Positions 25,479 to 60,476 of a stretch of 64,000 bases of DNA are shown piece by piece. The notes beneath the pieces were generated by a model. That model saw only the letters and a program-made list of their open reading frames with translations, was not told the origin of the DNA and did no database searches. Each line of letters opens with the position of its first letter. Position 1 is the first letter of the stretch. The translations under genes were made by a program, and so were the position numbers. The DNA lies in the IMG/VR virus record IMGVR_UViG_3300026521_000003, positions 1 to 64,000 of that record; one strand, given 5' to 3'.

Positions 25479-25601
25479 ATGACACTATCTCACAAAAAAA
25501 TAAAATCTATTAAAAAAGTTAAATATTATGACAAAGTATATGATATAACTATGAAGTCCAACCCACATACATTTTTTGCTAATAATATTTTAGTACATAA
25601 C
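25479..25601 (+). other. Split intein C-fragment (41 aa, basic), Ser+1 at 25602
   Basis: Block F VYDI and block G LVHN followed by Ser. Confidence 0.92.
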
Positions 25602-26633
25602 AGTTGCTATTTTAGAATAATGGAGGCAGAAAATTTGGAGGAAGCTCAAAAAATTGGTGCCGATGTTGTAAAAGCATGTGATGAAGGTAGTATTCCAATG
25701 TTGGTTAAAGATATTTTTAATGGTGATGATGTCATGAGATCCGATTTTGAAGCTATTGCCCGTTCAACATTATCATATGGTAAAAAGAAACAATATGCAT
25801 TTCTAAAAGGTTGGGAAGATGGTGAAGTACTTCCAAAGCCAAAATTAGGTATTACCGGTCTATCTATTAAAAGATCTGATTCACCCAAACAACTATCTAT
25901 GGAAATGAAACCGTTCTTTACTGAAATTATGAAAGGTTTAAAACATGAGCAAATCAAAGAAGCTATGGATAAAATTGAGTCGGATTATGATGATCTAAGC
26001 TTATATGATTTATCTGCAAAACGTTCAGCGAATAATTTAGGTAAATATTTAAAAGCATTCAATTATGAAATTGAATATAAATCTAGACCTTATAATATAG
26101 AAAAAATTGATGAATTTTTAAAAGAAGAGTACCCTGATATAAAAATTAAAATAAATGATAAAATATATTTTGATTTTATGAGAGAAGGTAGAGGTCGTTA
26201 TTCATTAGAAGATGGTGAATTAATAAAAGATGTTAATGGCGAAATTTATATTGAAGCAAAGGTAAAAATGGTTGTACCATTTCATATAAAGGCGTCTATT
26301 TTATATAACTATCTATTAGATGAATATAATTTATCATCCGAGTTTAATCAAATATTAAACGGTGAAAAAATTAAACTTTTTTATATTAAACCTACAAAAA
26401 TAAATATAAAATATACAAATAGTGATGGTGAAGTATTTGATATGATACAAGAATTTGATTGTATTGCATTCCCTTCTAGTTCTAAACACATACCATCATT
26501 TATTAATGATTTTACCCCAGATAAAAAGAGAATGCTAGAAACTTATTTCTTTGGTAAAATGGAAACTATTTTTGATGTTATTGGATTTAGCAAAGAAAAA
26601 CTTGAAAATATAGCTATGGATTCACTATTCTAA
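25479..26633 (+). CDS. polB: Split-intein C-half fused to family B DNA polymerase C-terminal part (palm/thumb)
   Basis: VYDITM...TFFANNILVHN|SCYF, then KKKQYA, GLSIKRSDSP, PFHIKASILYN, GEKIK. Confidence 0.92.
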   Translation: MTLSHKKIKSIKKVKYYDKVYDITMKSNPHTFFANNILVHNSCYFRIMEAENLEEAQKIGADVVKACDEGSIPMLVKDIFNGDDVMRSDFEAIARSTLSYGKKKQYAFLKGWEDGEVLPKPKLGITGLSIKRSDSPKQLSMEMKPFFTEIMKGLKHEQIKEAMDKIESDYDDLSLYDLSAKRSANNLGKYLKAFNYEIEYKSRPYNIEKIDEFLKEEYPDIKIKINDKIYFDFMREGRGRYSLEDGELIKDVNGEIYIEAKVKMVVPFHIKASILYNYLLDEYNLSSEFNQILNGEKIKLFYIKPTKINIKYTNSDGEVFDMIQEFDCIAFPSSSKHIPSFINDFTPDKKRMLETYFFGKMETIFDVIGFSKEKLENIAMDSLF

Positions 26634-27157: not shown

Positions 27158-28117
27158 CTATTTATGGAGCCAAGATTTAATAATTTCTTTCTGTTTTTGA
27201 CTAAGATCAACATAAAAAATTTCTATTTCTACTATAAAATCCCCGATTTTATCTTTATTAATTGACTTAATACCTTTTTCTTTAAAAACTAATTTCTTTT
27301 TATTTTTTATATCATTGGTGTCAATAGTAATTTGTTCATCAACACCATCAATAATAATTTCATCTTCTATTAAAATATCTAACACATTAAGTTTTAAAGT
27401 CTTATATATATCTAAACCATCTCTCCTAAATTCACTATCATTATTAATATTAAGTTCAATATATAAATCACCTTTTATATTATTAATTTTATTAGCTTTA
27501 CCTCTCATAACTAAACGGGTATGATTGTCGACTCCTGATGGTACAACACATTTTAATTTTATAATCTCTTCTTTGAATCCTAGACCATCACAGCTACTAC
27601 ATGAATATATTTTTGTATATCCTATACCTTTACAGTTTGAACATAATATATTTGTAGTAACAAATCCACTCTTACTTTGAATAGTGCCATTACCGTCACA
27701 ATTTGGACAGGGCTTAAAGTTACCACCATACCCGTTACATTCATTACATTCACTCTTTTGCTTAAATTCAAATGGTATTTCGACACCAATGATTGATTCA
27801 TAGAAATTAATGTGCATTTGAATTACTTCATCTTTTTTAAAAGTTTTTTTTAATTTCTTTTTGATTTCTTTCTTTGGGTATCTAAAAATTGTACGTGTAT
27901 TTTTATTATAACTATAATAAAGTTTATCATAATCAGAACGTTTTTGTGAATTTGAAAGAATATCATAAGCCGCATTAATCTTTTTAAAGATAGTTTCAGC
28001 CTCTAAGTCTTTATTTAAATCTGGGTGATATTTTTTTGCTAATTTTCTATACTTATATTTTATATCCTCTAATAAAGCATTAGGAGATATTTCCAAAATC
28101 GCATAATAATCAATCAT
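27158..28117 (-). CDS. dnaJ: DnaJ co-chaperone
   Basis: DYYAIL, J-domain KYHPD, four CxxCxGxG repeats, C-terminal domain. Start MIDYY follows GGAG. Confidence 0.92.
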   Translation of the reverse strand: MIDYYAILEISPNALLEDIKYKYRKLAKKYHPDLNKDLEAETIFKKINAAYDILSNSQKRSDYDKLYYSYNKNTRTIFRYPKKEIKKKLKKTFKKDEVIQMHINFYESIIGVEIPFEFKQKSECNECNGYGGNFKPCPNCDGNGTIQSKSGFVTTNILCSNCKGIGYTKIYSCSSCDGLGFKEEIIKLKCVVPSGVDNHTRLVMRGKANKINNIKGDLYIELNINNDSEFRRDGLDIYKTLKLNVLDILIEDEIIIDGVDEQITIDTNDIKNKKKLVFKEKGIKSINKDKIGDFIVEIEIFYVDLSQKQKEIIKSWLHK

Positions 28118-28170
28118 AGTTACTCCATTTTTAAGATATTTATTTAAGGAAATTAACATAAGTATTAATT

Positions 28171-28187
28171 TTGCAATATTTTTGCCA
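28171..28187 (-). promoter_or_regulatory. Candidate sigma54 (-24/-12) promoter facing dnaJ
   Basis: Minus strand TGGCAAAAATATTGCAA = GG-N10-GC. Confidence 0.4.
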
Positions 28188-28194
28188 TTTTAGT

Positions 28195-28221
28195 TTAAGT
28201 TTTTTGCACTATAACCGATAT
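28195..28221 (+). promoter_or_regulatory. sigma28 (FliA)-type promoter for the flagellin gene
   Basis: TTAAGTTT-N11-ACCGATAT versus consensus TAAAGTTT-N11-GCCGATAA, 100 bp upstream of the flagellin ATG. Confidence 0.75.
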
Positions 28222-28282
28222 TCTAATTGTAAGAGAAATATATACTACATTATATCATATTTCTCTTTAAATTAAACTTAAA

Positions 28283-28319
28283 TGGAAAAGGAATTTCCAC
28301 TTTACACATTGGAGGTGTA
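28283..28319 (+). promoter_or_regulatory. Two CsrA-type GGA-loop hairpins in the flagellin leader; the second contains the Shine-Dalgarno
   Basis: TGGAAA-AGGAA-TTTCCA (28283-28299) and TACAC-ATTGGAG-GTGTA (28303-28319). Confidence 0.65.
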
Positions 28320-28321
28320 TC

Positions 28322-29125
28322 ATGTTTAATTTAGGACAAGCTCAATCAATTTTAGGGATTAATAATTCAAATGATCAAATTTATAGATTAAATGAGCAGT
28401 TACAAACAGGTAAAAGAATTAACAGAGCGGCAGATGATGCTTCTGGTATGGCTATCGCAAACCAACTTAAATCACAAGCTAATGGTTTGGGTCAAGCCAT
28501 TAGAAATTTAAATGAGGCAATTTCATTAACAAACATAGCTGATGGAGCTTTAGAAGAATATACTAAAGTCCTTATGGAAATTAGAGATAAAGCGTCTCAA
28601 GCAATTTCTGATTCAAATTCAACCGAATCTAGAACAGCTTTACAAAATGATATTAATGAAATGATTAAATCTGCGGAAGCTATAGCAACTGATACGTCTT
28701 ATAATGGTATTAAATTATTAGATGGTACTTTTACAAATAAAGTATTCCAAACTGGGGCATATAGTGGACAAACAACATCTATATCAATTTCTAGTGTTAA
28801 AACAGCTGATTTGGGTATTGATGCGTTGACAGTTGATACTTCTACAAACGCTGCAACAGCATTGGATAATATCGATGCTGCTCTTAAATCTCTTGACGGT
28901 ATTAGAAGTGGTATCGGTTCTGTTACACAAGGTCTTGAATCTAAAGTTAGAAATATGCAAGTAACACAACAAAACGTCTTATCTGCAGAATCTAATATTA
29001 GAGATGTAGATGAAGCACAAGCAAAAGCTGAATTAGATAACTGGACTGTTAGAAATCAAGCTGCAATGTTCGCATTTAATATGGCAGCTCAACAACAACA
29101 AAGTATTCTAAGATTATTCCAATAG
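28322..29125 (+). CDS. Minimal flagellin (D0/D1 only), phage-encoded
   Basis: TGKRINRAADDASGMAIA, YNGIKLLDG, FQTGA, AESNIRDVD, C-terminal QSILRLFQ; 267 aa. Confidence 0.95.
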   Translation: MFNLGQAQSILGINNSNDQIYRLNEQLQTGKRINRAADDASGMAIANQLKSQANGLGQAIRNLNEAISLTNIADGALEEYTKVLMEIRDKASQAISDSNSTESRTALQNDINEMIKSAEAIATDTSYNGIKLLDGTFTNKVFQTGAYSGQTTSISISSVKTADLGIDALTVDTSTNAATALDNIDAALKSLDGIRSGIGSVTQGLESKVRNMQVTQQNVLSAESNIRDVDEAQAKAELDNWTVRNQAAMFAFNMAAQQQQSILRLFQ

Positions 29126-29139
29126 AATATTAAGATTAT

Positions 29140-29164
29140 AGGAGGGTTATTAACCCTCCTTTTT
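29140..29164 (+). terminator. Rho-independent terminator after flagellin
   Basis: AGGAGGGTTA-T-TAACCCTCCT followed by TTTT. Confidence 0.8.
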
Positions 29165-29182
29165 AATTAAAAGGAGATTATT

Positions 29183-29467
29183 ATGGGTGGATATGCTAAT
29201 GACGTAAGTAGTTTTTTATCAATTTTTTATTTTCGCATGGAAGAGAAATTAAATGAATTAATAGAATTGAGTAAAGATAAATCATTTGATAGTACTAAGA
29301 AAAGTGTTGCAATTAAAGACAAATTAATCGAAGCATTAGATATGCTTACAATGAGTGCATCAGATGATAAAATAAAAGAATTTACTGATTATCTAAGTAC
29401 GAAAATTATTCTAGGTAAAGTAGAAGATTTAGAGGACGCAAAACGTGTATGTAAACTAATACGGTAA
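29183..29467 (+). CDS. Putative FliS-like flagellin chaperone (divergent)
   Basis: All-helical, 94 aa. FLSIFY..MEEKL, FTDYLSTKI and LEDAKRVCKLIR align by eye with FliS helices (L.MLY...I.FL; LYDY...L; LDEV...L..LR). Lies between flagellin and flaG. Confidence 0.45.
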   Translation: MGGYANDVSSFLSIFYFRMEEKLNELIELSKDKSFDSTKKSVAIKDKLIEALDMLTMSASDDKIKEFTDYLSTKIILGKVEDLEDAKRVCKLIR

Positions 29468-29478
29468 AGGAGATAACT

Positions 29479-29799
29479 ATGATTCAGGAATTAACAAAAT
29501 CATTATCTAATTCAATACCTTCTATAAACTATACTGAACCACAATTAAATAATATACAAGAAAAATCTTTTAATGAAATACTTGATATTGAGAAAAGTAT
29601 AAATGAAGTTAATGAGTTATTAAAAGAAAAGAATCTAAAAGTTGAGTTAAATAGAGATATTAATATGATACAGATAAAAGAATTTGATGAAACTGGTGAA
29701 ATAGTATTAAAATCTACTCCACCAGAAGAATATATAAAAAGAGTTAAATACTTTAAAGAAAATATTCTTCCTAGTTTATTATTGGATGAAAAGGTTTAA
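29479..29799 (+). CDS. flaG: FlaG family protein
   Basis: INEVNELL...D.TGEIVLKSTPPEEYIK...LLLDEKV, the characteristic FlaG C-terminus. Confidence 0.8.
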   Translation: MIQELTKSLSNSIPSINYTEPQLNNIQEKSFNEILDIEKSINEVNELLKEKNLKVELNRDINMIQIKEFDETGEIVLKSTPPEEYIKRVKYFKENILPSLLLDEKV

Positions 29800-30563
29800 C
29801 TTTTAGACTTTAATTTTTCAAAAGCTAGTTTTTCCGCTTCAACATCTATATTATTAGATAATCTCAATTCGGTTGGGAAAGTATTTTCAATATACGGTGT
29901 TAAAACTGGTGGAACAAACTCTTTCCATTCATCAGATTCATCCATAATAGCTTTTCGGATTTCTGTTCCGCTCATACAAATACTTTCTTTTAGTCTATCA
30001 ACAATATGTATTTGAATAGTATTTTCACCATATTCTTCATTTAGAGCATTAAACCAACTTGCATCATGCTTAGAACCAGCATAGTAATGATTTGGTTTTG
30101 GTAGGTTCATACCATCAATTTTACCAAATACAAAAGAAGCCCAGGCAATTTTAGAAACCGCACCAAGATCTTTAAGCTCTATAATTTTTAATTTAGATTT
30201 TTTACCTGTTACACCAAAAACTTTTTCAATCATCTCTCTACGTTGTTTCGGTGTAAATGGATTATTAATATTGCCACTTTCTTGAATTGAACCTAAACCA
30301 ATAATGACAATATCCATTTCTTTCATCATACGAGAAATCAATTCAAAGTGACCATTATGCATAGGTTGCATTCTCATTACAGCTAATCCAACGTTTGGAA
30401 GCATTTCAATGTTTGTAACCTCTAAATCATCATCTTGATAATCTTCTTTTAATATCTTGATAGCAGCTTGCTCGGAATTTGCTTTCACAGTTTCTATTTC
30501 ATCATATGTAGAATTAAATTCATCTTCATATTTAAAGCTAATAGTGTAGGTATTCATAATCAT
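29796..30563 (-). CDS. Nicotinamide-nucleotide adenylyltransferase (NadM/NMNAT-like)
   Basis: RMQPMHNGH, IGLGS, NPFT...R..MI, SGTEIRK, W..FVP. Confidence 0.85.
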   Translation of the reverse strand: MIMNTYTISFKYEDEFNSTYDEIETVKANSEQAAIKILKEDYQDDDLEVTNIEMLPNVGLAVMRMQPMHNGHFELISRMMKEMDIVIIGLGSIQESGNINNPFTPKQRREMIEKVFGVTGKKSKLKIIELKDLGAVSKIAWASFVFGKIDGMNLPKPNHYYAGSKHDASWFNALNEEYGENTIQIHIVDRLKESICMSGTEIRKAIMDESDEWKEFVPPVLTPYIENTFPTELRLSNNIDVEAEKLAFEKLKSKS

Positions 30564-30625
30564 TCTTTTTCTCCTTAGTTATACTTTTTAACTTTGGTTA
30601 AATACTATAACAGTTTTTTCTTTAT

Positions 30626-30974
30626 GCACCACGCTGAGAAAACCCAATGATCTTTAGCCATTGGGATGAATCAGCAATAATGTTGTTAATTATATCAAAT
30701 TCAATATTAATTTTGTATTAATTTTACATTAAAATAATGTAAAAAGTATATAGATATAAAGTTTAAGGAGATCGGATTGAAATTAAATCGCAACTACAAA
30801 TATAGATTACAACCAAATACCAAACAATCCGATTTCCTTAAACTTTATTTCTTTACTGCAGATCAATCAGAATCTTTGTATCGAGAATGTCAGTTAATTC
30901 TGAAATTCGATGATTGGAGTGCCTCTCGGCACTCCCTTAGAAGCCCAATCGTCTTTAGCGGTTGGGTAGTTCAC
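30626..30974 (+). mobile_element. Internally deleted IS200/IS605-family (IS1341/TnpB) element
   Basis: Preceded by TTTAT. Left hairpin CCCAATG-ATCTTTAGC-CATTGGG, related right hairpin CCCAATCG-TCTTTAG-CGGTTGGG, ends in TTCAC. Contains a tnpB 5' stub. Confidence 0.8.
30777..30974 (+). pseudogene. tnpB: tnpB remnant (N-terminal HTH stub joined to the right end)
   Basis: MKLNRNYKYRLQPNTKQ matches the TnpB N-terminus. No RuvC or zinc finger follows. Confidence 0.75.
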
Positions 30975-30996
30975 TATACTAAATTATACATTAAAA

Positions 30997-31365
30997 TTAT
31001 TTTAACTCACATCTAGAAAGGTGAAATGTAGAACTAGGTATATGTCCTTGTTTTTTATCATATATTTGCCAACCATTAACAGGATCATTAAAGATTTCAT
31101 AAGTTTTAGTATGATAAATACGTATTGCCCCTTGGGGTGATAAACATATTAAAGTGGGATAATCATTTCTAACAAGATTAAGGGCATTTTCTCTAAAATT
31201 TGTTTTTTTAAAGAAATCTAGTTTAATAAATATTACGGAAATAATTAAAATAGGAACAATTATTGCACTCCATATCTTCACTAATATAAAAAAATCTGAA
31301 ATATATATTTTTTTAAGTCTATTTTTAATTAAAGCATATTTATTTTTATTATCTTTGATTGTCAT
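30997..31365 (-). CDS. Hypothetical membrane protein
   Basis: One hydrophobic segment. Confidence 0.55.
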   Translation of the reverse strand: MTIKDNKNKYALIKNRLKKIYISDFFILVKIWSAIIVPILIISVIFIKLDFFKKTNFRENALNLVRNDYPTLICLSPQGAIRIYHTKTYEIFNDPVNGWQIYDKKQGHIPSSTFHLSRCELK

Positions 31366-32588
31366 TATTTTAAAACCTTTAATAATTGTTCTTTAGTATT
31401 TAATTCCGGTTTATCAACTACTATTTTCAGAAGCATATTCAAATGCATTCCAATTTCCGGTCCTTTAAAACCAAGGTTTATCATATCTACACCATTTACT
31501 TTTAGTTGAGTAACTTTATATGGTTCTTCATCAACCGTACCCACCTTATTTTTAAGGGTTTTTAGAGTGATTAAACCGGCTTTATGATTATTCTCCTTAT
31601 TAAGAGTTTTAAACGTGTTTAAAAGTCGTTCACATAACTCGAAATTACCATCTGCTAATCTAAGCAGTGCTTTGACCGTTGCTTGATCTGAAAAATCTCT
31701 CCCCTCAAATCCATCTTGAAATGTAATGAAAAGTGTGTATAACGCTTTATATTCAGAACTCAATTTAAGTGCTTGAATAGACCCTTTCATTTCAAGTAAA
31801 AGTGGTAAGTAATCAAATGTCTTAAATATATCTACGAGTACCATTTTATGAACTTCTTTATCTTTAATAAATCTATGGAATATCCTCATATCATGTAGAG
31901 TATCAATAACAAAGTTTAAAGAATAAGAATCCTTTTTAAGAATTTTGAACATTGAGTTTAGCTCCTGATAAAGCCGTTCTACTGAAACAATAGAGTTATC
32001 ATACGTATAAATAGCTGCATCTAATTGATCTCTTGTTGTAGTAAAACCAAGACTATCAAATCGTGAGAGAAATCTCACAAATCGAATTGAACGAAGATTA
32101 TCTTCTTTAATCCTTTCAGTTGCGTCCCCAACAAATCTGATAATTCTATCATCAGAGTCTTGAATGCCATTAGTAGGATCTTTAAGTTCATTTGTTATAG
32201 GATTATACCCAACTGCATTGATAGTGAAATCTCTACGTTTTGCGTCTTCTTCAAAATTATCAGTAAAAGCAATGGTAGCATTTCTACCATCACAAGATAC
32301 ATCATATCGATACCGTGTTACCTCATATAGTTCTTTACCGATTTTAATAGATACAGTTCCATGCATTTCGCCAGTTGGGATGACAGTTTTAAATAATTTA
32401 TTAGTTATTTCTATTGGACAATTTGTTGCAAAATCAATATCTTTTGGACTAATACCAAGATATAAATCTCTAACAGGTCCACCAACTATAAGACATTCAT
32501 AGCCTGCATCCATAAAAGTTTTAGTAATAAAAAGTGTATCTGATTTAAAAGGCTCTGGAAGTTGATCAAAATATCGTTTAAAATTCAT
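31365..32588 (-). CDS. cca: tRNA nucleotidyltransferase (CCA-adding/poly(A) polymerase family)
   Basis: VGGPVRD...DIDFAT, EDAKRRDFTINA, EDNLRSIRFVRF. Confidence 0.9.
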   Translation of the reverse strand: MNFKRYFDQLPEPFKSDTLFITKTFMDAGYECLIVGGPVRDLYLGISPKDIDFATNCPIEITNKLFKTVIPTGEMHGTVSIKIGKELYEVTRYRYDVSCDGRNATIAFTDNFEEDAKRRDFTINAVGYNPITNELKDPTNGIQDSDDRIIRFVGDATERIKEDNLRSIRFVRFLSRFDSLGFTTTRDQLDAAIYTYDNSIVSVERLYQELNSMFKILKKDSYSLNFVIDTLHDMRIFHRFIKDKEVHKMVLVDIFKTFDYLPLLLEMKGSIQALKLSSEYKALYTLFITFQDGFEGRDFSDQATVKALLRLADGNFELCERLLNTFKTLNKENNHKAGLITLKTLKNKVGTVDEEPYKVTQLKVNGVDMINLGFKGPEIGMHLNMLLKIVVDKPELNTKEQLLKVLK

Positions 32589-32703: not shown

Positions 32704-33593
32704 ATGAATTTTAAAAAATTTAGAACACAATTTTTTGATACTTTTAACTTTGAAATTGATGGAAGATTACATTATGTATATAGAATTACAGAAATCGATA
32801 CAAATATGTCATATATTGGATCTAGAACATGTAATAGGTCTATCCACGATGCATATACTACATGCACCAATGATTTAAAATCTTATGGTACATCATCATA
32901 TAGAAAAGAATTTATAAAAGCAAACTTAGATAAATTTAAATTCAAGATATTACGAATTTTTGATAATTCGGTTGACAAAATATTATTTGAATCATTTATA
33001 CATCAGAAATTTGACGTTAAACATAATAATAAATTTTGGAATAAATCAAATCACACACCTAATGGTTGTGATACTACTGGAAGACAATTTACTCATAGTG
33101 AAGACCATATTAAAAAGAGAACTGAATCGAGATCAAAAACGATGTTGGAAGTTGGTGAAGATGGATTAAATAGGTATCAGAGAGCAAGTATAAAAGCAAA
33201 TAAAACAAAATTAAAGAAAGATAAGAATGGGTTAAGTCAATATCAGAAATTAGCTAAGAAAGCTTGGACGACAAAAAAGAAAAAGGATTTAAATTTACTT
33301 CAAAAAATAATCCACGTTTAAATACAATAATAATTATGAATGATAATGATGAAATTATTGAGATTATTGAAAGCTCATTTACTACTTTCTGCAAAGAACA
33401 TAAATACCCTATGAATGCGTTTAGGAAATCATATATTGCTAAAGGCAAAAAAATATATATTGATTTAGATAATGGTAATTTAAAGAAAATGAAAGATACT
33501 TTTGAGTATAATACATTTAAAGGGTGGTACGCTATAAAATATATAGATCTTTCCGATGAATTAATTAAAAAAGTAAAGGAGTTTAAAAGGTGA
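32704..33593 (+). CDS. GIY-YIG (Seg-like) homing endonuclease in two overlapping frames (32704-33321, 33264-33593)
   Basis: YVYRIT...SYIGSR, Y.TSS, E..., FWNK. The frames join at A AAA AAG (33273-33279). Confidence 0.75.
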
Positions 33594-33964
33594 AATTTTT
33601 AGTAGTAGATGATTCATCAACAATGAGACGAATTATAAAGAATACAATTATAAGATTGGGGTATAAAAAAGAAAATTTATTTGAGGCAGAAGATGGCGAA
33701 GTAGCATTAAATTTATTTAGAGAAAAAGGGAATGATTTTTTTGGGATAATTTTAACAGATATAAACATGCCGAATAAAAATGGATATGATTTAATAAAAG
33801 AAGTAAGAAAATTGGATGAGAATATACCAATCGTAACTATCTCAACAGAGGGTGGAAAATCTGAAGTTTTGAAAGCTTTAAAACTTGGTTCGACAAATTA
33901 CATCGTTAAACCGTTTACACCACAAGTACTTAAAGAAAAATTAAAAGATATACTTGGAGAATAA
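33590..33964 (+). CDS. cheY: Chemotaxis response regulator CheY
   Basis: VVDDSSTMRRIIKNT, TDINMP (phospho-Asp), TEGGK, NYIVKPFTPQVLKEKL, closely matching Campylobacterota CheY as I recall it. Confidence 0.92.
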   Translation: MKFLVVDDSSTMRRIIKNTIIRLGYKKENLFEAEDGEVALNLFREKGNDFFGIILTDINMPNKNGYDLIKEVRKLDENIPIVTISTEGGKSEVLKALKLGSTNYIVKPFTPQVLKEKLKDILGE

Positions 33965-57515: not shown

Positions 57516-59237
57516 TTAATATTTTTTTAAAATACGTCTTCCACTATCCGTATAAATTAAAAACCCATTCATTATCATATTTTCTTTAATTGTTAAATTT
57601 TCATCATACAAATCTATATATCCCATTATATTAGTATGATCTAAAGTATTATGGGAAATAAATATTTTTTCTTTATTATAATATAATGATTCTGATATTG
57701 ATCCTTCAAAACTAAAGTCAATCTTAAAAAATAAATCCAAATATAAATTAAATCTTCGGTCAATTGATATTATTATAGGCTTATCGGTCGATATTAAAAT
57801 ATCTATAAATGGATTAGTGTTAAAATTTATTTCTGGACATATTATAAAATGTTTAATTTCTATATTATTTTTATGATTAGAAATACCCATTACAGCTAAG
57901 AGTTCACCATTAAAAAATGCACCATACATTTTTATAAATGATAGGTTGATATTATACATATGTTTATTTAAAAAATCAAAACCTATGGAAGTATCAATTA
58001 TTTTGACTTCAAGCTCATTAATATCTAGGGTTTTTATTTTATATTTTAATTTATGGAGTATAATCTGTTTACAATAATCTTCATGATATTCCCATTCATA
58101 TTCATAAAATTGTATCAATGTTATATCTAAATTATCAGCGATTAGACTACTATCAATATAAGATGTATCCCTCGAAGTTGATGGTGACAAAATCTCTATA
58201 AATATATTTGATTTTAAGATTTCTATTTTATCCATATCTACTATCTTAAAGATATACCCTATTGAACTTAAAAAATCTTGGATTTTATTTAAAATATGTT
58301 TTCTATTATTTAATCTAGGATTACATTGAAAACAAACGGGTAAATTATTACTATCAATTAGACTTGTAATTATATTATTACATCTCTTACATTTAAATTT
58401 ATATTTATATTTGTTATCATATACCTGCAAATCATCAATACAAGTAACAAAAATATTATCTTTAAATTTTTCAAAAATTTTATTATTAAGGGTACTATCA
58501 ATTTTTGATAAGGATATAGGATTTTTTTGAGCAGAATAACTATCATATTTTGAAATAATTGTATTTTTACGTTTTTCTAAAATAGATTTATTCTTTATAG
58601 GAAATATAGTTCCGAATTTTTTTAAGTTTGTATTATATGCTTTTTTTCTAATATAATCTAATGATAAAGGGTGTTTAACACCATATTTAATCAAATTGGT
58701 AGTTATCGTTTTATTTCTAATTTCTTGAGATTGTTGTGCATATTCCACCCCATATTTCTCAATCATTGTCTTTTTTATTTTTTCTTTTGTACTATCTAAT
58801 TTTGCAATAGAATCAACACCATATTTTTCTTTAACCGTCTTTTTTATTTTTTCTTTTGTACTATCTAATTTTGCAATAGAATCAACACCATATTTTTCTT
58901 TAACCGTCTTTTTTAATTTCTTTTTTTGTTTTTCATTTTGTAAAGGGTGTTCTGTTCCATAATTTTTAAGAAATGTTATTTTTTGATTATGTTCTTTTGA
59001 ACATCCTAAATTAAATATATTAGTACGTTCATTAAATGAAGCATAATTTGAACAATTTTTAAATTGACATTTTGGAGGAGTATCTAGATCCCTTATCAAT
59101 AAATACCATTGGGCTTTTATAGATAAAGTTGGGTATCTCTCATTAAGATACCCAATAAGTTCTTTTGAAAAGTTTTTAAAATAAATATTTTTTTTAGTTT
59201 TATAATATTCAATTTCTTCTTTTAATTTAGTTTCCAT
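57516..59237 (-). CDS. Hef-like putative homing endonuclease with KYG repeats
   Basis: KKT..EKYGV repeats, CKRC...CFQC, C-terminal FL.K...YGAF...LLAVM...IDRRF...G.F...Y..G, typical of the Hef-like family in Campylobacter phages. Confidence 0.6.
   Translation of the reverse strand: METKLKEEIEYYKTKKNIYFKNFSKELIGYLNERYPTLSIKAQWYLLIRDLDTPPKCQFKNCSNYASFNERTNIFNLGCSKEHNQKITFLKNYGTEHPLQNEKQKKKLKKTVKEKYGVDSIAKLDSTKEKIKKTVKEKYGVDSIAKLDSTKEKIKKTMIEKYGVEYAQQSQEIRNKTITTNLIKYGVKHPLSLDYIRKKAYNTNLKKFGTIFPIKNKSILEKRKNTIISKYDSYSAQKNPISLSKIDSTLNNKIFEKFKDNIFVTCIDDLQVYDNKYKYKFKCKRCNNIITSLIDSNNLPVCFQCNPRLNNRKHILNKIQDFLSSIGYIFKIVDMDKIEILKSNIFIEILSPSTSRDTSYIDSSLIADNLDITLIQFYEYEWEYHEDYCKQIILHKLKYKIKTLDINELEVKIIDTSIGFDFLNKHMYNINLSFIKMYGAFFNGELLAVMGISNHKNNIEIKHFIICPEINFNTNPFIDILISTDKPIIISIDRRFNLYLDLFFKIDFSFEGSISESLYYNKEKIFISHNTLDHTNIMGYIDLYDENLTIKENMIMNGFLIYTDSGRRILKKY
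58768..58915. repeat. Perfect 69-bp tandem repeat (about 2.1 copies; 23 aa)
   Basis: KKTVKEKYGVDSIAKLDSTKEKI twice, identical at DNA level. Confidence 0.9.
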
Positions 59238-59243
59238 AACATA

Positions 59244-60476
59244 TTATTTTGTAGCTAGCCATTCTTTTCTAATTGATGCATTATCATCAAAAAATATTTG
59301 CATTAATTCATCTAAATGTCCTTGATCAGTAATATTAAAGGCATATTCATCCAAATTTGAAAATACATATTCCCAATCCGGCTTTTGCATAGATCCTAAT
59401 CCTTTAAAGTAATCAATTTTCCACGAATCATCAACCGCACCAGATTCTTTAGCTTCATCAAATTCATGTCTATTTGAATAATATAATACTTTTTTACCTT
59501 TTTTTGCAGCAATCATAGGAAATACAATTCTATTAATAAATGGGTTTTCATGATCCCAAAATAGTTCTGGGAAATATTCATGGAATAAATTAACAACAAG
59601 ATTATTAATAGCACTTCCATCTGGATCAGCATCAGTTGCTATATAAATTTTTGAATATTTCAATTTCGTATCAAAAGCAGGACGTAACCATTTATGAAAT
59701 CTAACTAATTTAGCAGTAGAATCAGCTTTTTTAATCTCTATACTTTGTGTTGTTTTTGGCATTTTTTTAAGTAACATAGACACTTTATGCCATTTTTTAT
59801 CAATATATACTTCATCGATGTCATTGCAAATTAATGTCGTTCTACCTATTTTAACTTCGTATTTAACACCATTTTTTCTAAATCCTCTAAATTCCCATTT
59901 TCTTCTAAAATGAAAATAATCTGGGGCTGAAAGATCAGAAATTGTAGCGTCACTTGTTTCTATTTTTTGAATATATCCACGATATAGTGTTTCATTATTT
60001 ACCAACTCACCAATACTAACCCATTTTTTATTTAAGTGGAATTTATCTTCTGAGCTAACAATTACTGTTTTGATTATAGGTTCACCTTCTTTATCAACTT
60101 CAAAAATACTTTCAAAAGTTACCTCATATATATTCACATTATCACTAATCACCCAATCACCCATTTGTTCATTAAACTCAAGATTTATTGCTGTAATTAT
60201 ATCAGCTACTTCATCATTATTCATTGCATCTATTGGTGCTTTACCATAAACATTTAAAACTTTACCTTTTAATGGCATCCCTGCTTGTGTCTCTGGATCC
60301 CTAATCTCAGTAAATGAAGCTATTGCAGAATTATGTGTTAATAATCCATTTTCAAGAATAAATGTTTCATTATCTTCTACTTGTATATCATTCATATTAA
60401 TGACTTTATTAGTACTATAAACACTATTAATTTCTACCATATCAAATTCATCAATATTTATTTCATTCAATTGCAT
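59244..60476 (-). CDS. Split-intein C-half fused to type II topoisomerase TOPRIM fragment (gp39/gp60, GyrB C-terminal-like)
   Basis: NDIQVEDNETFILENGLLTHN|SAIA (the SA of EGDSA), PLKGKVLNV, IATDADPDG, YFKGLGS. Confidence 0.9.
   Translation of the reverse strand: MQLNEINIDEFDMVEINSVYSTNKVINMNDIQVEDNETFILENGLLTHNSAIASFTEIRDPETQAGMPLKGKVLNVYGKAPIDAMNNDEVADIITAINLEFNEQMGDWVISDNVNIYEVTFESIFEVDKEGEPIIKTVIVSSEDKFHLNKKWVSIGELVNNETLYRGYIQKIETSDATISDLSAPDYFHFRRKWEFRGFRKNGVKYEVKIGRTTLICNDIDEVYIDKKWHKVSMLLKKMPKTTQSIEIKKADSTAKLVRFHKWLRPAFDTKLKYSKIYIATDADPDGSAINNLVVNLFHEYFPELFWDHENPFINRIVFPMIAAKKGKKVLYYSNRHEFDEAKESGAVDDSWKIDYFKGLGSMQKPDWEYVFSNLDEYAFNITDQGHLDELMQIFFDDNASIRKEWLATK
60330..60476 (-). other. 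Split intein C-fragment (49 aa, acidic), Ser+1 at 60329-60327
   Basis: Block F DIQV...TF and block G LTHN followed by Ser. Confidence 0.88.

Follow-up and report, generated by a model that had tools for sequence, protein, structure and literature searches.

A flagellin gene with altered terminal segments, next to a predicted FliS-like protein, in a 290-kb phage of probable vent Campylobacterota hosts

Why should a large phage carry a flagellin gene, and can a flagellin whose ends deviate from the consensus still serve as a filament subunit? The question was raised by an open reading frame at 28322..29125 (+) of a 64,000-nucleotide window (positions 1 to 64,000 of the virus record IMGVR_UViG_3300026521_000003, whose full length is 289,880 bp). 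An earlier note, made from the sequence alone, had described the product as a minimal flagellin with almost no D2/D3 region, a short N-terminus lacking the INTN motif, a divergent C-terminal D0 and well-kept D1 motifs, and had proposed that it might be a cytoplasmic FliW/FliS sponge, a filament terminator or a virion component rather than a normal filament subunit. The analysis described below confirmed what the note had observed in the sequence. The interpretation offered there was only partly supported, because the gene context points to a flagellin that most likely enters the flagellum of the host.

The flagellin and its altered D0 segments

The ORF encodes 267 amino acids. It begins at the first possible start after an in-frame stop, thus no longer N-terminus can be read. 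Both terminal regions matched the Pfam profiles above the curated cut-offs: Flagellin_N (PF00669) with 1.4e-35 and 122.8 bits (cut-off 26.6; residues 11-138 correspond to profile positions 12-139), and Flagellin_C (PF00700) with 3.3e-15 and 56.6 bits (cut-off 23; residues 181-266). The N-terminus reads MFNLGQAQSILGINNS and the C-terminal stretch reads DEAQAKAELDNWTVRNQAAMFAFNMA, as given in the earlier note. When aligned with 31 canonical relatives, the protein showed a 5-column gap immediately after Met1, and the s-f-r-I-N part of the INTN motif was absent. HMMER alignments to solved flagellins displayed the same offset (query residue 10 corresponds to chain residue 15, and 13 to 17/18). The possibility that the sequence GINNS represents a displaced INTN motif was considered but rejected, because it aligns with the G-V-Q-N-N stretch at positions 17-21 of the best solved match, chain 9yh1. 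The C-terminal D0 has the same length as canonical D0, but departs from the consensus D-[YFM]-A ... Q-[AS]-N ... L-L-[RQ] at the usually conserved places: D-[YF]-A is replaced by D-E-A, a new Trp appears, Q-A-N is replaced by M-A-A, and the last element is L-F-Q. D1 is well kept, with 45-56% identity to canonical flagellins.

The AF2 model (pLDDT 88.5) predicted a D0-D1 fold consisting of ND0 (residues 4-29), ND1 (40-95 and 101-124), a beta-hairpin (140-154), CD1 (174-227) and CD0 (231-266). Nothing but the beta-hairpin lies between the D1 helices. In one respect the earlier note has to be corrected: the small size is not unusual and is not evidence of abnormality. Solved filaments of Kurthia, Roseburia, Shewanella, Leptospira and Caulobacter are built from flagellins of 265-281 aa, and in a Foldseek comparison the model overlaid solved filaments, among them those of 270-276-aa flagellins, at TM 0.85-0.90.

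To determine how widespread the altered termini are, relatives were collected. A tblastn search of 50,697 records of isolated phages yielded only distant flagellins (28-36% identity), mostly in fragments, and a DNA search yielded nothing relevant. Scans of IMG/VR with a single protein and with an alignment found only one relative (locus L002), whereas a metagenome scan brought the collection to 20 loci. In the tree the altered forms occupied one branch of 62 flagellin clusters (SH-aLRT 98.5), all of which lack the INTN motif and have the 5-residue gap. The clade is diverse (55-100% identity) and also includes 450-aa forms carrying a 180-aa surface domain (Flagellin_IN). Members with readable context lie on phage-like contigs of 150-500 kb. 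The earlier note had stated that close bacterial flagellins sharing these termini would speak against its reading. No such case was found: a scan of 185,579 bacterial species genomes returned only distant canonical flagellins of Desulfobacterota and Desulfurellales, although, the scan being pattern-based, absence is not proof. Similarly, 37 genomes of the phylum reached through a related locus (L010) gave matches of only 37-50%, and no host genome was identified.

Both altered segments are under purifying selection. The dN/dS values were 0.04-0.40 in ND0 and 0.09-0.34 in CD0, no higher than in D1. The mutual information between ND0 and CD0 columns was dominated by the split between the 267-aa and 450-aa subclades and was not used. 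A paired sequence change was seen, from TG-[L]-RIN / D-[YF]-A in canonical flagellins (44 of 53) to TG-[K/N/R]-RIN / D-E-A in the clade (46 of 66).

Upstream signals and neighbouring genes

A sigma-28 (FliA)-type promoter was recognized at 28195..28221 (+), consisting of TTAAGTTT, 11 nt and ACCGATAT, in agreement with the TAAAGTTT-N11-GCCGATAA-like elements of class III promoters, which have fixed spacing. The -10 element of C. jejuni sigma-28 promoters is CGATTT (PMC3656092). The strict pattern occurs only once in the 289,880-bp genome, at this site (0.6 expected by chance). Of the upstream regions of 21 relatives, 17 matched TAAAGTT-N12/13-CCGATA with at most 2 mismatches of 13, in a position-independent fashion, whereas shuffled sequences gave a mean of 0.24 and a maximum of 2. 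Among 283 ORF upstream regions of the phage 7 passed the same criterion, and this was the only one with at most 1 mismatch.

The predicted 5' leader (28228..28321 (+), about 94 nt, the transcription start being inferred) contains a 5' stem-loop at 28231-28267 and two hairpins, SL1 at 28283-28299 with GGA at 28290-28292 in the loop, and SL2 at 28303-28319 with the Shine-Dalgarno GGA at 28311-28313 in the loop. The two GGA motifs are 21 nt apart. The predicted folding energy was -22.2 kcal/mol (z -3.1). Of 21 related leaders, 17 had at least one GGA-in-loop hairpin (27 in all), compared with 3.8 +/- 1.7 loci (maximum 10) in 300 shuffles. Both hairpins were present in 11 of 21, and about a quarter of the relatives lacked a clear upstream GGA hairpin. 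At least 7 different stem sequences keep the pairing through compensatory changes. The layout corresponds to that of the C. jejuni flaA leader, which has two ANGGA stem-loops with 21-nt spacing, the second over the ribosome-binding site (PMC4894983). In CsrA/FliW-controlled flagellin leaders of the flaA / hag type the two GGA motifs lie about 18-21 nt apart. An Rfam search of 27900-31400 found nothing. The gene is followed, 15 nt after the stop codon, by an intrinsic-terminator-like hairpin at 29140..29165 (+) (9 pairs, 5 G-C) and a T run. Two terminator-like sites were found in the region against 0.4 +/- 0.6 in shuffles, and relatives have hairpins at the same place.

Exact-match contigs over the flagellin gene were present in two metatranscriptome libraries at a depth like that of the tail sheath gene. 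However, contigs from RNA libraries do not prove transcription and carry no strand or 5'-end information.

The next ORF, at 29183..29467 (+), encodes a 94-aa protein predicted to form an antiparallel four-helix bundle with an N-terminal cap segment (AF2 pLDDT 89.4). An ORF of 85-109 aa follows the flagellin gene in nearly every related locus long enough to show it. Only Tyr4, which lies before helix 1, and Leu12 are invariant. Foldseek ranked FliS structures first (probability 0.9-0.99, TM 0.6-0.76, E 0.2-2), and in VIA-align 8 of the top 10 matches were FliS (rmsd 1.3-1.9 Å), with Z up to 12.6 and rmsd 1.3-1.5 Å to H. pylori FliS. Four-helix bundles, however, give high structural scores easily, designed bundles reaching Z 12.3. 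Sequence comparisons did not connect the protein to FliS: the Pfam profile (PF02561) gave no hit at E <= 0.1 in the genome and none at E <= 1 for any of 14 family members, a PDB profile search was negative, and hhalign against a true FliS gave a probability of 0.2%. Two distant family members gave FliS hits of E 0.003 and 0.026, below the cut-off. The FliS assignment rests on fold, position and one residue. Co-folding with the flagellin scored ipSAE 0.57 against a best control of 0.00, which was graded as weak support only and came without a reported interface.

This gene is followed by a FlaG homologue of 106 aa at 29479..29799 (+) (PF03646, 2.2e-5, 25.0 bits against a cut-off of 23.8), present after the chaperone-like gene in a subset of relatives. 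A CheY-type single-domain response regulator of 124 aa (PF00072, 2.5e-24) lies 4 kb further on at 33590..33964 (+) and is the only receiver domain in the genome. Its best solved match was entry 3gwg/3h1e, titled 'Chemotaxis protein cheY homolog' (E 2.6e-36), which is H. pylori CheY1, and its nearest named relatives, 58-62% identical, were CheY proteins of Hydrogenimonas, Lebetimonas, Arcobacteraceae and Campylobacterales. CheY homologues lie near the flagellin gene also in the related loci L003 and L004/L005.

That the genome belongs to a phage is supported, besides the virus record itself, by a tail sheath gene (3.6e-9), a terminase at cut-off, virion and tail-fibre PHROG hits and homing endonucleases. 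The host was inferred, not linked: CheY and the flagellin are nearest to Campylobacterota proteins, the DNA comes from vent, epibiont and biofilm metagenomes, and the GC content is 27%. Searches of the phage genome for csrA, fliW, Pfam-type fliS, sigma-70 region 4, fliD and maf were all negative, and no flgL gene was found, suggesting dependence on host parts.

Possible roles of the phage flagellin

The reading we favour, with a probability of roughly 0.55, is that the locus is a flagellar cassette of a jumbo myovirus infecting hydrothermal-vent Campylobacterota and that the flagellin is an exported subunit that remodels the host flagellum. In this view the gene would be transcribed by host RNA polymerase with host FliA, and its leader would copy the architecture through which CsrA and FliW gate translation of the host's major flagellin. 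The protein would be bound at its altered C-terminal D0 by the phage FliS-like protein, which would dock on the host export gate FlhA through its N-terminal tyrosine, by analogy with FliS, in which an N-terminal Tyr (Tyr10 in Salmonella) is absolutely conserved and essential for FlhA docking (PMC5932034). The flagellin would then be exported through the host flagellar type III system and polymerise at the filament tip, and filaments grown during infection would consist partly or wholly of phage flagellin. In C. jejuni, FlaG competes with FliS-flagellin for FlhA (PMC11536152); phage FlaG would hold back host FliS-flagellin in the same way, and phage CheY would bias motor switching. The likely benefit is control of the motility or the filament surface of the infected cell, for example keeping the cell in a favourable chemical zone or hiding a flagellar receptor from other phages. 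The analysis established the gene, its clade and the selection acting on it, the promoter and leader motifs and their conservation, the neighbouring genes and the fold matches, whereas dependence on FliA and CsrA, translational repression by CsrA, binding of the chaperone-like protein to flagellin and to FlhA, export, polymerisation and the benefit are inferences. A precedent exists in a temperate Enterobacter phage that replaces host flagellin with its own isoform in the filament (PMC13418256). On the other hand, loss of the first five residues, of the INTN motif and of the D-[YF]-A aromatic could make the subunit incompatible with host flagellin, FlgL or FliD, none of which is supplied by the phage.

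For the same reasons it cannot be excluded by computation that the protein passes the export gate but then caps or poisons the growing filament, as the terminator or dominant-negative option of the earlier note would have it, or that it is simply secreted like the non-structural C. jejuni FlaC (PMC5466977), which shows that minimal flagellins can be secreted without being built in. Together with FlaG, which antagonises flagellin delivery, such a subunit would shut down host filament growth during infection. We consider this unlikely, though it is the strongest of the alternatives, because the whole D1 polymerisation surface and the heptad pattern of D0 are kept under purifying selection across at least 62 clusters, because the Flagellin_IN surface domain carried by sister forms has no obvious use on a cap or poison, and because stopping flagellin synthesis would not need a chaperone, a class III promoter and a CsrA-type leader. 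A regulatory decoy is less probable still. An abundant leader RNA could titrate host CsrA, as the flaA leader, a documented CsrA antagonist (PMC4894983), does, and/or the nearly canonical N-terminal D1 could bind host FliW; either would rewire the CsrA regulon, with filament building secondary or absent. The statement in the earlier note that the FliW contact lies in D1 is roughly right: in B. subtilis it is the N-terminal part of D1N plus part of D1C, with N72 sufficient (PMC6070490), and in C. jejuni the N-terminal subdomain (PMC5466977). The absence of csrA and fliW from the phage speaks for this role, but an RNA sponge would need neither 267 codons held at a dN/dS of about 0.06-0.3, including both D0 segments, which matter for export, chaperone binding and polymerisation, nor a FliS-like protein and FlaG. 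A FliS sponge in particular is unlikely, since the cassette brings its own chaperone-like gene. Decoy activity could, however, also exist alongside filament remodelling.

A virion component, in the form of flagellin-like fibres or decoration on the phage particle, appears very unlikely. Genes with weak virion and tail-fibre PHROG hits lie 5-12 kb downstream on the other strand, and the RNA-library depth resembles that of the sheath gene. However, the flagellin gene sits among DnaJ, DNA polymerase, NMNAT-like, CCA-enzyme and CheY genes rather than in a structural block, its promoter match, leader, FliS-like neighbour and FlaG all belong to flagellar export, and in other phages the flagellin plus chaperone-like pair sits in different surroundings. 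Equally improbable is a recently captured host gene without a role for the phage. Flagellins are highly expressed host genes that a large phage could pick up, and D1 resembles bacterial flagellins, but the clade is old and occurs in several different phage genome contexts, always with intact frames, low dN/dS and kept regulatory signals, and no bacterial genome with this form was found in the scan described above.

A more far-reaching proposal, which remains tentative, is that vent jumbo phages carry an orthogonal flagellin-chaperone pair, in which an altered D0 is matched to a divergent FliS-like protein. Together with FlaG, CheY and mimicry of the sigma-28/CsrA checkpoint signals, this would let the virus take over the host export gate, rebuild the filament from viral subunits and steer the infected cell. 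That would be virus-controlled motility in a non-temperate phage.

Comparison with known systems

Only one phage-encoded flagellin system has been worked out, the TldR prophage of Enterobacter described in 2025-2026, and the present locus points to a second, independent route: a whole motility cassette on large phages of chemolithotrophic vent bacteria, plugged into the late-flagellar checkpoint of the host by promoter and leader signals that appear to be copied. If the flagellin is built in, viruses would be shaping motility and filament surfaces in vent biofilms; if it blocks assembly, it would be a natural inhibitor of filament growth. In either case the clade is a natural experiment on how much of D0 can change while the protein stays under selection. 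It may also provide a naturally orthogonal chaperone-substrate pair for studying how FlhA selects its substrates.

The 94-aa protein shares with FliS (PF02561; 1ORY, 6LEA, 6CH3) the predicted four-helix bundle, a similar size and the location next to a flagellin gene, and its N-terminal Tyr is likened to that of FliS by analogy only. It has no detectable sequence similarity to FliS, is 25-40 residues shorter, and its family has only 54 clusters among 1.84 billion representatives. C. jejuni FlaC is, like the phage protein, a small D0-D1 flagellin of Campylobacterota, and uses the flagellar export system, but it is secreted rather than built into the filament and is not bound by FliW (PMC5466977). 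No specific sequence relationship to FlaC was seen in searches that were not aimed at it, the best matches being structural FlaA/FlaB types. The minimal filament-forming flagellins of Kurthia (6t17), Roseburia (9hpz), Shewanella (FlaA/FlaB, 9oxj/9oxk) and Caulobacter (FljK, 6xl0) have the same D0-D1-only architecture and are overlaid by the model at TM 0.82-0.90 over the full length, with only 25-35% identity. These keep the canonical N-terminal motif and C-terminal D0 consensus.

C. jejuni flaA (PMC4894983, PMC3656092) shares with the phage gene a sigma-28-type -10 element, CGAT(A/T)T, and the two-hairpin leader. D1 is closely related, and the filament flagellins of C. jejuni and H. pylori are among the best solved matches. 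FlaA, however, is 576 aa in the solved entry, has a glycosylated outer domain, a canonical MGFRINTN N-terminus and a DFA...LLQ C-terminus, and uses the host's own FliS. FliC-P of the Enterobacter Flagellin Remodeling prophage (FR-phi) with TldR (PMC13418256) is likewise a phage-encoded flagellin isoform, which replaces host flagellin in the filament and is linked to FliA-type promoters and, in related loci, to CsrA control of a flagellin 5' UTR. That system belongs to a temperate siphovirus of a gut enterobacterium and silences host fliC with an RNA-guided, nuclease-dead TnpB derivative encoded beside the flagellin. In the 290-kb myovirus no tldR or other full-length TnpB-like gene lies beside the flagellin gene: the only OrfB_IS605 match is a 402-aa frame, a full-length TnpB 237 kb away (266115-266456 in genome coordinates) that still has zinc-ribbon Cys pairs, while a miniature, internally deleted copy of 411 nt lies 1 kb downstream at 30600-31010. 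The vent cassette instead carries its own FliS-like gene, FlaG and CheY, and the D0 of its flagellin is altered.

The flagellin gene and its phage clade

The ORF at window 28322..29125 (+) is intact and comprises 267 codons. It starts at the first possible start codon after an in-frame stop, 8 nt behind a GGAGG sequence. The encoded protein matched the Pfam profiles Flagellin_N (1.4e-35) and Flagellin_C (3.3e-15), and its AlphaFold model (pLDDT 88.5) showed the D0-D1 flagellin fold with only a beta-hairpin where larger flagellins carry D2/D3. The window is the first 64 kb of a 289,880-bp virus record with 27% GC, estimated to be 87% complete. The record encodes a tail sheath, a terminase, virion and tail-fibre-like proteins, homing endonucleases and an intein-split DNA polymerase. 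It is a jumbo myovirus. The flagellin is the only one in this genome. Replication genes (window 25479-26633, 57516-59237, 59244-60476 and 32704-33321) are broken up by selfish elements: a DNA polymerase piece beginning with an intein splicing motif, a homing endonuclease beside a topoisomerase II fragment, and a SegE-like GIY-YIG gene.

The earlier note had described a minimal flagellin with a short N-terminus lacking the INTN motif, a divergent C-terminal D0 and well kept D1 motifs, and every element of this observation was confirmed. The N-terminus is MFNLGQAQSILGINNS. In an alignment with canonical relatives there was a five-column gap directly after Met1 and the INTN motif was absent, and alignments to solved flagellins showed the same 4-5 residue offset. 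The C-terminal D0 is as long as usual but departs at the normally conserved positions (D-E-A for D-[YF]-A, a new Trp, and M-A-A for Q-A-N), whereas the last residues (ILRLFQ) stay close to the usual LLRLLQ. D1 is well conserved. However, the small size is not unusual: the model overlaid solved filaments made of 265-281-aa flagellins from Kurthia, Roseburia, Shewanella, Leptospira and Caulobacter at TM 0.82-0.90. Residues 31 and 231 (window about 28412-28414 and 29012-29014) may have changed together. Canonical flagellins pair TG-L-RIN with D-[YF]-A (44 of 53), the phage clade has TG-[K/N/R]-RIN with D-E-A (46 of 66), and several members have L/F with L. This could reflect a putative hydrophobic contact at the D0/D1 junction swapped for a salt bridge, a possibility inferred from the sequences alone.

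A search of 5.8 billion proteins returned about 60 clusters of 267-269 aa at 55-100% identity, all with the same short N-terminus (MF-x-x-SQANAI-x-GINNS) and the same C-terminal D0. Nine forms of 450 aa carry the same termini plus a Flagellin_IN insert. On a tree of 112 sequences the 62 remodelled forms were located on one side of a branch (SH-aLRT 98.5), with the long forms as a subclade. Many members lie on contigs of 150-496 kb, and where the context was read it was phage-like. Of these related loci, L002 is an IMG/VR record, L003 (496 kb), L014 and L019 are syntenic with this genome across DnaJ, flagellin and the neighbouring genes (15 shared ORFs in L003), and L004/L005 share CheY, ThyX and ClpP. 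Other members have different neighbours, so the cassette appears to move between phage genomes. The note had named close bacterial flagellins with the same termini as the finding that would refute its reading. None was found in a pattern-based scan of 185,579 bacterial and archaeal species genomes, which returned only distant canonical flagellins at 35-51% identity.

To estimate selection, codons were compared in eight pairs. The dN/dS values were 0.04-0.40 for ND0 and 0.09-0.34 for CD0, similar to or lower than in D1 and lower than in the short middle segment. D0 is disordered in the monomer and matters for export, FliS binding and polymerisation. The strong constraint on it argues that at least one of these functions is in use.

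A second kind of cassette was found at positions 2908-4194 of L032 and L033, 48-kb and 106-kb contigs of the same vent metagenome series (GC 26%). L033 carries a 276-aa flagellin with fully canonical termini followed directly by a bona fide FliS (PF02561, 2.7e-23), among genes with no family matches and no homologues in this phage. L032 carries the same kind of canonical 276-aa flagellin. These contigs may belong to another large phage or element.

Predicted regulatory signals around the gene

Upstream of the gene lies TTAAGTTT-N11-ACCGATAT (28195-28221), a predicted promoter close to the sigma-28 consensus of enteric bacteria. Its core matches the C. jejuni sigma-28 -10 element CGATTT (PMC3656092). 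This and the other regulatory signals had not been recorded in the note. The strict pattern occurs once in the 290-kb genome, at this site. Of the upstream regions of 21 relatives, 17 matched TAAAGTT-N12/13-CCGATA with at most 2 of 13 mismatches, whereas shuffled sequences gave a mean of 0.24. Among 283 ORF upstream regions of this phage 7 passed, and the flagellin upstream region was the only one with at most 1 mismatch. The motif is kept while its distance to the start codon and the surrounding sequence vary.

The predicted 94-nt leader folds (z -3.1) into a 5' stem-loop and two small hairpins that present GGA in their loops. The second hairpin covers the Shine-Dalgarno sequence, and the two GGA motifs are 21 nt apart. 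Of 21 related leaders, 17 had at least one such hairpin, 27 in all, against 3.8 +/- 1.7 loci in shuffles, although many of these loci are related to one another and the counts are not independent. At least seven different stem sequences keep the pairing, for example TGGAAA/TTTCCA, TGGAC/GTCCA, TTTCAC/GTGAAA and GAGC/GCTC. This is the architecture of the C. jejuni flaA leader, which has two ANGGA stem-loops with 21-nt spacing, the second over the ribosome-binding site, and through which CsrA represses translation and is itself titrated (PMC4894983). The stop codon is followed by a terminator-like 9-bp hairpin with a T run. Searches of the phage genome detected no csrA, fliW, Pfam-type fliS, sigma-70 region 4, fliD or maf gene. 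These signals would therefore have to be read by host proteins.

Neighbouring genes, host and expression

The next gene (29183..29467) encodes 94 aa and has a counterpart of 85-109 aa directly behind the flagellin in nearly every related locus long enough to show it. The family is only about 40% conserved per column, with Tyr4 and Leu12 invariant, and is small (54 clusters among 1.84 billion representatives). No sequence match to any Pfam family or solved structure was found. The model of the protein (pLDDT 89) is a four-helix bundle whose best structural matches are FliS. FliS structures took Foldseek ranks 1-5 and more with probability up to 0.99, and VIA-align gave Z 12.6 and rmsd 1.3-1.5 A to H. 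pylori FliS, with FliS making up 8 of the top 10 entries. However, helical bundles score easily and designed bundles reached Z 12.3, therefore fold alone is not decisive. Co-folding with the flagellin scored 0.57 against 0.00 for the best control, which was graded as weak support. Two distant family members gave sub-threshold FliS hits, and hhalign against a true FliS was negative. In FliS, an N-terminal Tyr is absolutely conserved and essential for docking on FlhA (PMC5932034). FliS binds the C-terminal D0 of flagellin, and in C. jejuni it needs the last 10 residues (PMC5466977). The gene was therefore read, by inference, as encoding a divergent, dedicated FliS-like chaperone whose partner would be the remodelled C-terminal D0.

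The following gene encodes a FlaG homologue. In C. jejuni, FlaG competes with FliS-flagellin for FlhA (PMC11536152). Four kb further on lies a gene for a 124-aa CheY (33590..33964), the only receiver domain in the genome. It is about 60% identical to CheY of Hydrogenimonas, Lebetimonas and Arcobacteraceae, and its best solved match is entry 3gwg/3h1e, H. pylori CheY1. CheY homologues accompany the flagellin in L003 and L004/L005. On the other side, a full-length DnaJ gene (window 27158-28159 (-); J domain, zinc-finger domain and C-terminal domain) is transcribed divergently from the flagellin and is kept next to it in the syntenic relatives L003, L014 and L019. An NMN adenylyltransferase-like gene (29796-30563 (-)) and a CCA-adding / poly(A) polymerase-family gene (31365-32588 (-)) flank the cassette, and both are conserved in L003 and L014 at 54-64% identity.

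The similarities of flagellin and CheY point to a host among the Campylobacterota. The best-matching solved filaments were H. pylori FlaB and FlaA and C. jejuni FlaA, and the best NCBIfam models were flagellin A, flagellin B and flagellin families. The DNA is found in hydrothermal-vent, epibiont and biofilm metagenomes. Two metatranscriptome libraries contained exact-match contigs over the flagellin gene, and one of them contained no exact-match contig over any other gene in the 3.9-kb stretch. Both also contained the tail sheath gene at similar depth. This suggested transcription in situ but does not prove it, because the contigs carry no strand information and DNA carry-over is possible.

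Interpretation and comparison with known systems

The cassette looks built to be treated by the cell as a late flagellar substrate. It has a FliA-type promoter, a CsrA/FliW-type leader, a chaperone-like partner with an N-terminal tyrosine that by analogy would serve in docking, and a regulator of access to the gate. The most economical reading, to which a probability of about 0.55 was assigned, is that the flagellin is exported and built into the filament. The remodelled D0 would then be one half of a co-evolved pair with the FliS-like protein and the partner ND0. The gene, its clade, the constraint on its termini, the conserved sequence signals, the neighbouring genes and the fold matches rest on the analysis itself, whereas the reading of the signals by host FliA and CsrA, the binding of the chaperone-like protein to flagellin and FlhA, export and incorporation into the filament are inferred.

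The note had proposed that the protein may be a cytoplasmic FliW/FliS sponge, a filament terminator or a virion component rather than a normal filament subunit, and this interpretation was supported only in part. The main rival of the reading preferred here, less likely but excluded by nothing computed in this work, is that the altered D0 makes the subunit a cap, a poison or a merely secreted protein, with FlaG helping to stop host filament growth. A regulatory-decoy role for the leader (towards CsrA) or the protein (towards FliW) is plausible as an added function, but as the whole explanation it is doubtful since it accounts neither for the constraint on D0 nor for the chaperone-like gene. 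A FliS sponge is unlikely, since the cassette brings its own chaperone-like protein, and a virion role, which fits neither the neighbours nor the signals of the gene, is very unlikely.

By profile and fold the protein is a member of the flagellin family, but it lacks two features of canonical filament flagellins, the N-terminal INTN motif and the C-terminal D0 consensus. The 94-aa protein resembles FliS by position and predicted fold but is not a member of PF02561 by sequence. The locus is not a TldR system, as the only TnpB-like gene is 237 kb away and looks full-length. A 411-nt internally deleted copy of an IS605-family element was found at window 30600-31010. Its left part (77% identity) and its right 133 nt (95% identity) match the ends of a full element with a 402-aa TnpB-like frame at about 265,700-267,111 of the phage record. 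The 79-aa ORF 30777..31016 is the remnant of the tnpB start (56% identity over 50 aa). The deleted copy has 26-nt hairpin repeats at 30640-30665 and 30941-30966 and a 31-nt inverted repeat at 30749-30779 / 30825-30855, and one DNA run showed a variant joint at 30678 to 30777. The retained right end is where such elements encode their guide RNA scaffold.

Full-text searches of 8.1 million PMC papers and 0.36 million preprints found only the TldR work on phage-encoded flagellins. Incorporation into the filament has been shown for the only studied phage flagellin, FliC-P of the Enterobacter prophage FR-phi (PMC13418256). What differs here, on the reading preferred above, is that the system has its own putative chaperone in place of RNA-guided silencing of the host gene.
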